Assembly (NCBI GenBank): GCA_002104905.1
Contig: MCFE01000047.1
Coordinates: 133,528 to 197,527 of the forward strand
Reading direction: 5' to 3'
DNA from: Basidiobolus meristosporus CBS 931.73
Taxonomy: Eukaryota > Fungi > Basidiobolomycota
DNA length: 64,000 bases
The stretch's first letter is position 1. Each line of letters begins with the position of its first letter. The notes under the pieces are model-generated. The model saw nothing but the letters and a program-made list of their open reading frames with translations. It ran no database searches and was not told the DNA's origin. A program made the translations under genes and the position numbers. Below are positions 11,419 to 29,232 of the stretch, piece after piece.

Positions 11419-12127
11419 TTAGAATCTGAGCTTAGTGAAGAACCACTTGTTCTTTCCGGTGGTATAACTGGAGGAATCGATTGTTAGCTTGGGCTTAGGG
11501 CGGGTCGTAGAAACATAGGCTTACCGCTCCTCGAAAAGCTTCTTGATGGCCTTCTTGGAAGCGTTTCTTTGGGTAGGCTCCTTGAAAGATTCGGGGGAAA
11601 CAGCCTTCTTGATTTCTTCCAACTCCAAACCATATCTACGACCAGGCGGTTTAGTATTGGCCATTTGGGTGATTCGTCGATTGTCGGCTTACCTGGTGGG
11701 CATGATGTGGTTGTAGTTGACAACCTTGATGAAAGGCTTGACCTTGGAGCGCTTGGAGATGCGCTTCTTGCCCATGGACTTGTTCACCTTAAGAGGATAT
11801 CTTTCGACACCAGCGACGATGGCATGACCGTAAGCACGTTCTTTGGTACCTTCATCAAAATGTACAAACAAAAACAAAAATCAAGGTCATTCAAATCTAT
11901 GTGTGGTTCAGTTGGTAGTGGTGCAAGAACATGACAAGTGCAATATGAATCAGTCAGAAATGATTGGTATTTTTTACAACTACGACTTTCTTGCCAGCGT
12001 AGCGGCCTTGGAGAACGATAGCAACCTAGTGTATTCTCGCGGTTAGCGCCATCTCGTCTGCTTCTGAATGGATGGATGCCACTTGGAAGAATGATATTAC
12101 CTTGCCGGGTTTAATGAATTTGACCAT
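11419..12127 (-). CDS. RPL27: 60S ribosomal protein L27 (eL27), 3 exons
   Basis: [53 protein letters not shown]...[13 protein letters not shown]...[12 protein letters not shown]. Intron 2 must be AT-AC to restore KNFDEG. Confidence 0.97.
11862..11970 (-). other. Non-canonical AT-AC intron (109 nt) in RPL27, candidate minor-spliceosome (U12-type) intron
   Basis: Minus strand: gta aaa a|ATACCAATC...ATGACCTTGATTTTTGTTTTTGTTTGTAC|at ttt gat gaa. CCTTGAT lies 19 nt from the 3' end. None of the GT-AG combinations I tried keeps the frame. Confidence 0.8.
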
Positions 12128-12499
12128 TTTCGTGCGAGGTATCTGCCAAGAGATAGAGGGTTTTTTCCATACACACCATCGTTACCTTTAACTGATTCCC
12201 CGGATCCAGTGGATCGCCTCCTATCCCTCGTTCTGCAAATCAAGCACCCCAAATCACGGATCCCGAGCCAGTCAGTGCAGCGCTTCAAGGGCTTTTAGTT
12301 TAAGATCACGCTATCTCGATCAAGATAACCAGAATGTTGAGCCATGGTATGTGGATGTGATCTTAAAGTTAACTAGAATCCAGATTAATCGCATATTTTT
12401 GTTCCTTTTTTTTTTCGTGACAGGCTCAAGTACCAAGAATACTGCGAAATTTAGAACTCCTTTATTACCTCCTTCGCAGAACGTGATAGAGTGAACAAT

Positions 12500-13823
12500 A
12501 TGGCTATTGACCGTAAGACAGACGAAAAACTCACCTTCGAGACCAGTGAAAGCGTCAAGGTGGTTTCCACCTTTGATCAGCTCGGTTTGAAGGAAGATCT
12601 TCTACGTGGCATCTATGCCTACAGTAAGTCATCACCTCGCACCCATGCGGTTGGCCGTATTGACTTTTCTCGTGGCTAACCAGCTTAACTCCGTAGATTT
12701 CGAAAAGCCCTCCGCCATCCAGCAACGTGCCATTGCTCCTATCATGAAAGGACGCGACGTGATTGCTCAGGCTCAATCTGGTACCGGTAAAACTGCCACC
12801 TTCTCCATCTCCATCCTCCAAACTGTCGACACCTCGATCCGTGAGACACAAGCTTTGGTCCTTGCTCCTACCCGTGAGCTTGCCACCCAGATTCAAAACG
12901 TAGTCTTGGCTTTAGGAGATTACATGAACGTGCAGTGCCACGCCTGCATCGGTGGCACAAGCGTGGGTGAAGACATTCGTAAGCTCGATTATGGACAGCA
13001 CGTAGTTACCGGTACTCCCGGAAGAGTATACGACATGATTCGTAGACGTAACTTGCGCACACGTAACATTAAAATGCTTATCCTCGATGAGGCTGATGAG
13101 CTACTCAATCGTGGGTTCAAAGACCAGATCTATGACGTTTACCGCTACTTGCCACCATCCACCCAAGTGGTATTGCTCAGCGCCACACTCCCACATGACG
13201 TGCTTGAGCTTACCACCAAGTTCATGACCGACCCAATCCGCATTTTGGTCAAACGTGATGAGCTTACCTTGGAAGGGATCAAACAATTTTTCGTAGCCGT
13301 GGAGAAGGAGGAGTGGAAGTTTGATACCCTCTGCGATCTGTACGATACCTTGACCATTACGCAAGCCGTAATCTTTTGCAACACCAGAAGAAAGGTCGAT
13401 TGGTTGACCGAGAAAATGAGAGAAGCCAACTTCACGGTGTCCTCCATGCACGGAGAAATGCCCCAGAAAGAGAGAGACTCCATTATGCAGGAGTTCCGAC
13501 AGGGCGCTAGTCGTGTGCTGATTACCACCGACGTCTGGGCCCGTGGTATTGACGTCCAGCAAGTCTCCCTGGTCATCAACTATGACCTTCCGTCCAATCG
13601 TGAAAACTACATTCATCGGTAAGGTTTCATCCCATCAGACATATCAGAGGCGGATACTAATGAGCATCGTTAATATAGTATTGGTCGTTCCGGAAGATTC
13701 GGTCGTAAGGGTGTGGCCATCAACTTCGTCAAGAACGACGATGTCAAAATCCTACGCGATATAGAACAATACTACAGTACACAGATTGATGAGATGCCAA
13801 TGAACGTCACCGATCTGATCTAA
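12500..13823 (+). CDS. FAL1: DEAD-box helicase eIF4A-III / Fal1 (3 exons)
   Basis: [21 protein letters not shown], and the eIF4A3-type [32 protein letters not shown]. Confidence 0.95.
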
Positions 13824-26300: not shown

Positions 26301-29232
26301 GCCCGTGTGGTACCCAACGTCAGTTTCATTGTAATAGTAAACTCTGGGGCATAGCATCAAGCCCAGCCCTATGATGAAGAACATCATGATCCCCCAGAGA
26401 AACATAATGATGAGGCATAGCGCAACCTTTTCTCTCCAAGCTATCTGGATGTCTGGGCGCTTGAGACCACATGCCGAAAGCATAAAGGTAGGAATCCACC
26501 ACGTCAGGGTCCAGGTGGTTCCCAGCCAGCACTTACGAACTCGAGTGACTGGTTTGACTTCAATCACCTGTTCATTTGGCTTTATGCCAGTCTCGGAATG
26601 ATCTACCTTAGTGAGCTCGATACCATTATTGGCATATCTATATAAATGGTTAATATCGAAGTTGCCGCGATTGCTTCAAAGATTTTGCTTACTTGGATAT
26701 TTGGTTCTTGGAATCATACTCGCTGCTCATGATACTGTTATCGTCATCACCATAATGCCCGTAAGCTCCATGATAATTGCGATGGGCCTCGTAAGGATCT
26801 TCGCTGACAAAACTTGCCCCATCGTCGTAGTAGCGAGAATGCAGAGCTGGGTGATTTCCGGCCGTGAGAAACTCACTCCCGTGGCGGTTGTTTAGGCCGG
26901 ACATCAGGGATTCATTATCACCAGAGACGCCGCCCTTTAATGCTGCACGCTGGTCTTTCTCCACACTTCTGAGGCTGTCCTCGAGTCGCTTCCAGGTATT
27001 TTCACTCAGAAAGACCTTACTGCTATTTCCGACCATAACATCAATATCGCTCCAACCGCTTATCGCCTTTACCGCCTCAATTTTCTGAACATTGCTCCGG
27101 TTTTCATCGAGACCAAGTTGCTCAAATATTGGCTGGTACCTGTCGAGGAATTCCGAAAACTCATAACTCGCTGTGAAGTAGAAGCCCAGTCTTTTTGTTA
27201 TATCGGTGAGCGAATAGGATTCGATCTGAGTTCTGACACTCTTGACATCAAAACCGAGATGATCCGGACTCGGATTTATGTGAACGATATGCCAAATCTT
27301 GGTCTCTTCGATTGTGGTGAATAGCTCGTTCAAGGTGGAATTCAGTTGAGCCATGACAGTGGTGGACTTCGTGGGCGTCTTGTTGGCGGGCTTCCTAGGA
27401 TCGTCGGACTTCTTATATCTACGACTTGGCTGCCTCATTGGCTTTGTAGGGTGTTGTGCTGAAATCACAGTGTTTTTGTTACGGGGATGAGTCTCTGTAG
27501 CCACGGCAGCACTACTAAATAGTTCTTTGATGAAGGGGTTTGAGCTTGCGACGTTCCCTCGAAACAAATTGACAAAGTCTGCGGAGAGTACATCTAAATT
27601 TTTCTCGCTGAACGAGCCAGTTGAATATTCTATACGGGCCTGCAAAGTGTCTGATCGCAAAGTGGGTAGCAGGTACGTCTACATGTAGCATGAATGGATG
27701 TCCTCTGAAGGAACTTTGAATAACAGAGCCAAGAGATTCCTTTTCATCTCGTTTTTCATCATGTGCATGTTCGTCTATAAGAGACATCAGGCTTCTGTCT
27801 GCTCCAGGATCCCCTTGGCCACACAACAGCTCAATACATTTGGTGTTATCGCCATAGTTTATCTTGGGTAGGCTGATCCCTTCGCTGGCCATCTCGGCAT
27901 TTATCCCGACGGAGTCATCAAAGATGGACTTCAAAATGAATTGTTCCAATTTTTCATTGGCGAAGTTGATGCAGAATCCCTCAAAATGATTTTCCTTCGA
28001 GTGTTGGAAACCAAACTGATCCAGGACTCCAATGAAGTTCGCTACCTTTTCCTGACATATGCGGCCGTTGATGGCCTCAACCAGCCATGTGAAAAGAAGC
28101 GAGTACAAACCACGAGACAAGGAGTCACGTTGCTCCCTAGCTGCCTTGGCATCTAGAAATACGGTACATATGTCTTTTCCTATCATGACAGACTTGAAAG
28201 TCAAGGTGTCGCTGAGTGATGAGACGGATATTCCCAGGAACTCAGCAATGATCTCCAGAAGATCCTGATTCTTGATGGAGCATGAGTCCTGAGTTTCTTG
28301 GTCAACAAACTCCAAGTTTCCTAGGTGAAGGATAACGGATAGAAGGCGGAAGATTTGGAGTTGTACTTTGGTCTTAAGGCCAAGGGTTTTCATGGATTCC
28401 TTAAGCTCATTGAAACGTGCTTGGTCATCGACATCTGGGATCCGATAACACTGAGTTCTCGATAAATAGTTGAAGTGGGTAGGCTCCTGAAGATGTAGAT
28501 GGGTTTTCTCTTCAGAATTGGCACCAAGCAGTAGATAATAGAATATGTTGAAGCTTCTCTCATCCTTAGCCGCACTCGTAACTCGGGACTTTTCCAAGAG
28601 GTAAGTTAAAGTTTTTGTTCCAATGACTCTACCTCGTTCGTTATACTGAACTTCCTGGAACATCCCATATCTAGATGCGTTGGGATTTTGAAGCGTCTTA
28701 GCGTTACCGAATGCCTCCAGTACATTTTGTGCCACTTGCACCTGTTCGTGAATCCTTGAATCTTTCTTGGAATTGGTAAGGTTACAAAACTGCTTCAAGA
28801 GGAGCTTATATGACTCGGTCTTTCCACTTCCAGTAATTCCACTGGCAAGGATATGTTAGTCAAGGAATCCATCGGCATCATTACGACTTATAGCACTTAC
28901 CTGAGTAATACAGTTTGATCCTGGCCAGTCCTGCGAAGGTGGAGATATGCTTTGGCGGCAAGCTCATATATATGACATGGCAGATTTTGGGCATTCCCGG
29001 TAGTATTTCGATAGCATGCTTCAACGTACTTCTGAGCATTTTCATCAGCATAGATATCCAGCTGTTGCGATGGGTTAACAGAAACCAGAATCGAGCTATT
29101 AATCCTAATATAGGGAGCTTTTAACTCATATTGGTGCTTAAGGGATTCAACCACGATATCATCAGATATATTCTCAAGCAACGTTAGATCTAGGGTATAT
29201 GGTGATTCCGGAGAAGTCTCCGTTGCTGACAT
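23400..29232 (-). CDS. Class V myosin-motor chitin synthase (myosin head, two cytochrome b5-like domains, CHS2 catalytic domain, DEK-C), with a +1 frameshift near 27635
   Basis: P-loop SGITGSGKTE, NASRYG, LDQFGFQ, CINFANEKL; catalytic GEDRYLT and QRRRW; C-terminal DEK-C TKKQVREQL. Two GT-AG introns (about 28.84-28.90 kb and about 26.64-26.69 kb). Confidence 0.93.

Follow-up and report, generated by a model that had tools for sequence, protein, structure and literature searches.

An AT-AC intron with an atypical donor in a ribosomal protein eL27 gene of Basidiobolus meristosporus, with counterparts in Mortierellomycota-like contigs

The minus strand of the window (the whole 64,000-nt stretch of Basidiobolus meristosporus CBS 931.73 DNA that was analyzed) carries, between the start codon at 12127 and the stop codon at 11419, a five-exon gene for the ribosomal protein eL27 (RPL27). 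The exons (12127-12101, 12025-11971, 11861-11693, 11635-11525 and 11467-11419) were searched and aligned separately, and candidate splices were joined locally for translation only. The translation of exon 3 (...MPTR) matched the Pfam family Ribosomal_L27e (PF01777) at 3e-15, and the exon translations, with Asn28 across the second junction, were identical residue for residue and over the full length to the annotated 136-aa eL27 model ORY03384.1 (P0163), found by profile search and encoded on a contig (197,527 bp) equal in length to that of the neighbouring FAL1 protein. Three of the four introns are ordinary, with GTAATA or GTAAGC donors, CTAAC or ACTAAA branch words and YAG acceptors: intron 1 (12026-12100, minus strand; GT-AG, 75 nt, CTAAC branch word), intron 3 (11636-11692, minus strand; GTAAGC...TAG, 57 nt) and intron 4 (11468-11524, minus strand; GTAAGC...CAG, 57 nt, CTAAC branch word).

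The genome of B. meristosporus contains at least four eL27 genes (ORY03384.1, ORX85490.1, ORX96444.1 and ORX98001.1), 90-94% identical, which fits the known paralogue richness of this genome. The peptide VKNFDEGT is read in the protein models of all four, as well as in three eL27 models of B. ranarum; one model of the latter species, KAK9729183.1, located on the contig that bears FAL1, is partial (93 aa).

The plus-strand neighbour of the eL27 gene (exon 12699-13619) encodes a sequence that matches eIF4A-III/FAL1 from B. meristosporus CBS 931.73 (P0001) at 100% identity, and the two genes are transcribed divergently from a 372-bp spacer (window positions 12128-12499). The public model of this FAL1 gene has 407 aa and that of its paralogue 396 aa. 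An upstream ATG (approx. position 12334) is followed by an intron-like GTATGT...ACAG stretch, and the N-terminus of the model may be questionable.

The second intron of the eL27 gene (11862-11970, minus strand) is 109 nt long, begins with ATACCAATC, ends with TTTGTAC, and lies in phase 1 within the codon for Asn28 (A|AT). In order to define its borders, we used a local script to enumerate every GT-AG, GC-AG, AT-AC, GT-AC and AT-AG pair between exons 2 and 3 that left the reading frame open and free of stop codons. Among the 72 solutions, only the 11970/11862 pair yielded the eL27 sequence (...VVVVKNFDEGT...). Each of the GT-AG and GC-AG alternatives deletes at least 12 conserved residues, and AT-AC donors at 11964 or 11961 add two to three residues found in no homologue. 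Nested or two-step splicing was rejected by reasoning, as the final junction would still have AT-AC ends. The position of the border is ambiguous by 2 nt (A|AT...AC|AT), and AT-AC is the sole recognized class among the three resulting registers; those that are compatible with the orthologous introns described below as well are only AT-AC and TA-CA. The fact that a single splice restores eL27, and that this splice gives ORY03384.1, confirmed that the AT-AC intron is a genuine spliceosomal intron. It was already implied by the public annotation.

The first-pass annotation, which had placed an AT-AC intron here on the grounds that its removal restores VVVKNFDEGT, had the coordinates, the length and the TTTGTAC end exactly right. 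Two further features that it listed were also borne out: no CTRAC is present near the acceptor, and the intron is longer than the local norm (median of 59 nt for the nine stringent GTAAGY..CTRAC..YAG introns of the window).

Several candidate properties of the intron RNA were discarded. A self-clamping fold was rejected, since the intron folds less well than its own shuffled versions (z +1.59), and the duplexes found between the 5′ and 3′ parts of the orthologous introns of loci L002 and L003 (see below) use different partners. No Rfam family matched in the window, in the eL27 gene region or in loci L001-L006, which disposes of a hosted snoRNA or other known RNA family within intron 2; no snRNA genes were found within the window.

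Orthologous introns were sought in metagenome contigs, which were scanned by means of the exon 3 alignment; exons 2 and 3 were then located in each of the 80 eL27 loci recovered. Two of these (L002 and L003) contain an intron at the same codon and in the same phase, AAA A|ATAGCA[A/T]ACCAACAGCTG ... TATTAC|AT GTC GAT, with a length of 634 and 648 nt, respectively, while a third (L001) shows the same 3′ end before the contig stops. The exon 3 translations of L002 and L003 are identical (54/54 aa) to two Benniella proteins, and that of L001 is closest to Gamsiella (Mortierellaceae-like); these three loci are therefore referred to as Mortierellomycota-like. Two other loci (L005 and L006), whose exon 3 is 53/54 identical to that of Umbelopsis, also have an intron here, but of the ordinary U2-type GT-AG kind: its donor is GTATGY and its branch word CTAAC. 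Most of the remaining loci have no intron at this site or have one elsewhere, and exon 2 could not be placed in a minority of them. The comparison of intron positions proposed in the first-pass annotation thus revealed a new case, namely a same-site, same-phase AT-AC intron with a similarly odd donor in Mortierellomycota-like contigs.

Public protein models point to the same junction. The 136-aa models of Lobosporangium, Gamsiella, Linnemannia, M. alpina and Benniella read VKN[IV]D[ED]G at this position. In at least eight other Mortierellomycota models, translation continues past the donor and gives KN[SN][KN][PS]T..., and a further two lack VKNVDE; the read-through models back-translate to /ATA[AG]CAA[AC]CCNAC in at least five Mortierellomycota genera. 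These mis-predictions indicate that gene predictors find no canonical splice there. In all, this intron is wrongly predicted in at least 12 public eL27 models of Mortierellomycota (P0186, P0188, P0193, P0194, P0199, P0212, P0215, P0230, P0237, P0187, P0228 and P0249), with read-through insertions of 4-50 residues at the AT donor or with VKNVDE skipped.

The possibility that the Basidiobolus intron is an artefact, i.e. an assembly error or an unspliceable intron in a dead gene copy, is very improbable. The organism could perhaps dispense with one of its four eL27 copies, but this one has an undamaged reading frame that gives the annotated protein, which also speaks against the unspliced pseudogene considered in the first-pass annotation; in addition, identical AT-AC ends recur in independently assembled metagenome contigs from another phylum. 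The best explanation of the shared site, phase and ends is that the AT-AC intron was probably inherited from before the split between Basidiobolus and Mortierellomycota. The similarity between the Basidiobolus and Mortierellomycota-like introns themselves is marginal (best gapped local score, p ~0.05).

The donor word ATACCAATC (11962-11970, minus strand) matches neither RTATCCTT nor GTAAGT, and was correctly described at the outset as non-consensus. According to the published rule, a U12-type 5′ splice site reads /RTATCCTT and tolerates no more than a single C-to-T change at +5/+6 (PMC2846911). The Basidiobolus donor /ATACCAAT departs from RTATCCTT at +4, +6 and +7, and the donors of L002 and L003 (/ATAGCAAA and /ATAGCATA) do not obey the rule either. 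Unlike U12-type AT-AC introns, the eL27 intron lacks the near-invariant ATATCCTT. By definition, U2-type AT-AC introns have a donor that, position +1 excepted, fits the U2 consensus well (PMC1557818); positions +4 to +6 of the eL27 introns read CCA or GCA in place of the consensus AGT, which places them outside this definition too. Judged by its sequence, the donor fits neither published class, U12-type or U2-type class II.

We also computed duplex energies between the donors and short boxes of the U1, U6, U11 and U6atac snRNAs. This complementarity check, suggested in the first-pass annotation, gave no useful pairing with any of these boxes: the values ranged from −1.6 to −2.7 kcal/mol for the Basidiobolus AT-AC donor and from −1.6 to −3.0 kcal/mol for all three AT-AC donors. 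With the U1 box, the AT-AC donors gave −1.6 to −2.0 kcal/mol (Basidiobolus, −1.6), as against −6.6 to −11.3 kcal/mol for the other three donors of the eL27 gene.

The donor word itself is similar in the two phyla: A|ATAGCAAACCAAC in the Mortierellomycota-like introns and A|ATACCAATC in Basidiobolus are alike at 7/9 positions. It may be asked whether AUANCAANC (or ACCAAY) is a signal in its own right, which would mark a small AT-AC class in early-diverging fungi. Instead of U1/U6 or U11/U6atac, its reader would then be a variant snRNA, or else a dedicated RNA-binding protein, in conjunction with one of the spliceosomes. The conservation of the word in at least five Mortierellomycota genera and its 7/9 match to Basidiobolus are consistent with such a reader, as is the failure of all four snRNA boxes to pair with it; moreover, efficient splicing is required in a gene whose ribosomal protein product is expressed at a high level. 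However, beyond the initial ATA the cross-phylum match amounts to only 4/6 positions (p ~0.04). We consider this explanation, including the existence of a distinct class, rather unlikely.

Two sequences adjacent to the donor could influence its choice. The first is GTAAAA (11972-11977, minus strand), which encodes Val-Lys in frame; situated 7 nt before the donor, it resembles a U1 site more closely than any other sequence in the vicinity and may act as a pseudo-donor. L002 and L003 likewise have GTAAAA or GTGAAA. The second is a U-rich word just 3′ of the donor, CAATCATTTCT (11956-11966, minus strand), an exact copy of which occurs inside the intron of L001. The significance of this 11-mer shared by Basidiobolus and L001 is marginal, and it is suggestive only; the Umbelopsis-like GT-AG introns have related words after their donors.

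The upstream GTAAAA could alternatively serve as the donor of an unproductive splice. A candidate GT-AG intron of 81 nt (11897-11977, minus strand), predicted from sequence, overlaps the AT-AC intron and has the structure GTAAAA...ACTGAAC (11912-11906)...CATAG; the 11977/11897 splice would join GTT to ATT TGA, thus creating a stop codon. Competition between the productive AT-AC splice and this canonical-looking GT(11977)...AG(11897) splice could be a means of feedback regulation of eL27 output, and might operate with any splicing machinery. The elements fit together, since the GUAAAA donor is accompanied by ACUGAAC placed 10 nt before CAUAG and by a stop after the join; a YAG precedes the conserved block (see below) in L001 and L003, and two Mortierellomycota models (P0228 and P0249) are consistent with the use of GTAAAA as a donor. 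On the other hand, L002 has ATG in place of the YAG, so that the arrangement is not conserved in that locus, and GTAAAA is forced by the Val-Lys codons. A regulatory role of this kind seems unlikely to us. It would resemble the autoregulatory introns of ribosomal protein genes (yeast RPL30 and Xenopus L1; PMC2846911) in combining a suboptimal intron with a possible competing unproductive splice.

The 3′ part of the Basidiobolus intron contains three overlapping or adjacent elements on the minus strand. The block AGATTTGAATGACCT (11884-11898) includes AATGAC, a candidate U2-type branch word whose A lies at a distance of 25 nt from the 3′ end. Overlapping with this block is the U12-like branch word CCTTGAT (11880-11886), the A of which is located 20 nt from the 3′ end, so that the first-pass annotation was right as to the presence of this motif close to the acceptor. 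Finally, a T-rich tract (11864-11883; 75% T over 20 nt) reaches the terminal AC and contains no AG and no other AC. This tract is an outlier: its T fraction is 0.75, and in the 79 putative introns that a loose definition gave for the window the median is 0.30 and no value exceeds 0.55.

U12-type introns have the branch sequence TCCTTRAY approx. 10-26 nt from the 3′ splice site, and a branch-to-3′ distance of 20 nt is near the upper limit for this type. With 48 occurrences of CCTTRAY in 128,000 strand positions, about 1% of random 30-nt windows would contain this motif. The Basidiobolus intron has CCTTGAT with its A at −20, and none of the introns of L001-L003 has such a word in the last 45 nt. 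The first-pass annotation had taken the AT-AC ends together with CCTTGAT as the mark of the minor spliceosome. This does not hold for the orthologous introns, which keep the odd donor without CCTTRAY; their sole conserved branch-like word is 37-69 nt from the 3′ end, with a polypyrimidine tract between. That word forms part of the block AGATTCGTATGACCT, which is invariant among the three Mortierellomycota-like introns and agrees with AGATTTGAATGACCT at 13/15 positions. As proof of homology, the agreement between the two blocks was rejected, since it is not significant as a free search, and we treat it as a hint only.

All four AT-AC introns share a common arrangement: ATGAC is followed by an A-poor tail (24, 36, 51 or 68 nt) that has no AG and in which AC occurs only at the very end. 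This corresponds in all four orthologues to the layout of class II introns, with a branch word, a polypyrimidine tract and the first AC as the 3′ end, and departs from that of U12-type introns, which have no polypyrimidine tract (75% T in Basidiobolus; A-poor tails of 36-68 nt in the orthologues). As read from the sequences, ATGAC with an A-poor, T-rich tail lacking AG and ending at the first AC is a U2-type layout. Furthermore, the block-to-end distance of 37-69 nt in the Mortierellomycota-like introns is far outside the U12 range, which argues against U12-dependent splicing.

The host genome runs a minor spliceosome. B. meristosporus has 249 minor introns, the highest density known in fungi (PMC10639083), a number given as 237 in another study (PMC11347168). 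Within the window there are five matches to RTATCCTT, none with a fitting branch word and acceptor downstream, so no textbook U12-type intron was found in it; the match at 28854 (minus strand) is, by eye, probably coding sequence. For Mortierellomycota, a literature search on the minor spliceosome returned no usable statement.

Against this background, intron 2 could be a U12-dependent intron with a degenerate donor, in which the U11/U12 di-snRNP would be held mainly by CCUUGAU; splicing would be slow and possibly rate-limiting for this eL27 copy. The AT-AC ends, the CCTTGAT whose A is less than 25 nt from the 3′ end and which would be met by chance in only about 1% of cases, and the abundance of U12-type introns in the host (PMC10639083) are all in keeping with this, and U12 introns are known in ribosomal protein genes of other zygomycetes (S13; PMC2846911). 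Several features speak against it. The donor deviates from RTATCCTT at three positions and has no complementarity to the U11 and U6atac boxes, the branch word is missing from all three Mortierellomycota-like orthologues, and their block is too far from the 3′ end. A strong T-tract is likewise not a U12 feature. U12-dependent splicing in Basidiobolus is a serious though less probable alternative, and intron 2 is in any case not a canonical, textbook U12-type intron as far as its sequence features go.

Our tentative preference, with slightly less than even probability, is that intron 2 is an ancient AT-AC intron with a degenerate donor that is spliced by the major (U2-type) spliceosome. This preference is based on the layout of branch word, tract and first AC, on the U2-type intron of the Umbelopsis-like orthologues, and on the lack of the U12-like word in the Mortierellomycota-like ones. 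We infer that the major spliceosome would remove the intron as an AG-independent intron. A weak branch word (AAUGAC or UUGAU) together with the strong uridine tract would recruit U2, the first AC after the branch would be taken as the 3′ end, and the pair formed by A(+1) and the last C would stand in for the usual G/G contact in the second step. Because the donor has almost no complementarity to the snRNAs, it would probably be fixed by its context, that is by GUAAAA 7 nt upstream, by the all-A exon end facing loop I of U5, and by the U-rich word that follows. Among the mechanistic ideas of the first-pass annotation, a transition from U12-type to U2-type, or a U2-like state, fits best with these data, while a divergent specificity of U11/U6atac is unlikely.

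The U2-dependent class II introns (human SCN4A and SCN5A; PMC1557818) are a close parallel to this preferred reading. Both they and the eL27 intron combine AT-AC ends with a polypyrimidine tract and no U12 donor, and at the eL27 site an orthologous U2-type GT-AG intron exists in another lineage. Unlike them, the eL27 intron has a donor that is also off at +4 to +6 (ACCA or AGCA, not AAGT). This is an argument against U2-type splicing, since the donor, with +4, +5 and +6 all wrong, is equally far from the U2 consensus. The low chance expectation of CCTTGAT, the active minor spliceosome of the genome and the marginal cross-phylum similarity of the introns also count against it. So does the general predominance of the U12 type among the AT-AC introns of organisms that have a minor spliceosome.

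AT-AC introns are usually sorted by their donor into U12-type or U2-type class II, a scheme into which the eL27 intron does not fit. Its host gene is essential and strongly expressed, and the intron site shows AT-AC ends and a comparable donor word in two phyla of fungi. The intron is a natural test case for how a 5′ splice site is chosen when hardly any pairing with snRNAs is available, and for the route along which U12-type and U2-type introns interconvert. In practical terms, many Mortierellomycota eL27 models are wrong at this point, and pipelines that detect minor introns by donor score will miss the eL27 intron.

Two minor observations concern the orthologous introns. In all three Mortierellomycota-like loci (L002:1383-1407, L003:800-824 and L001:~385-410), a small hairpin precedes the conserved GATTCGTATGACCTG block by 6-9 nt. 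Its sequence is GTTTCC-TCGCATT-GGAAAC, and in L001, where both sides of the stem are changed, TTTCCC-TCGCTTT-GGGAAA; in Basidiobolus there is only a weak counterpart (GTTC...GAAC). In addition, the Umbelopsis-like GT-AG intron of L005 contains an internal ATAGCAACCATTCACCAGATTCGT (L005:630-660, intron positions ~199-230), which consists of the Mortierellomycota donor word and the GATTCGT of the conserved block; by chance, such a 9-mer match would be expected approx. 0.01 times.
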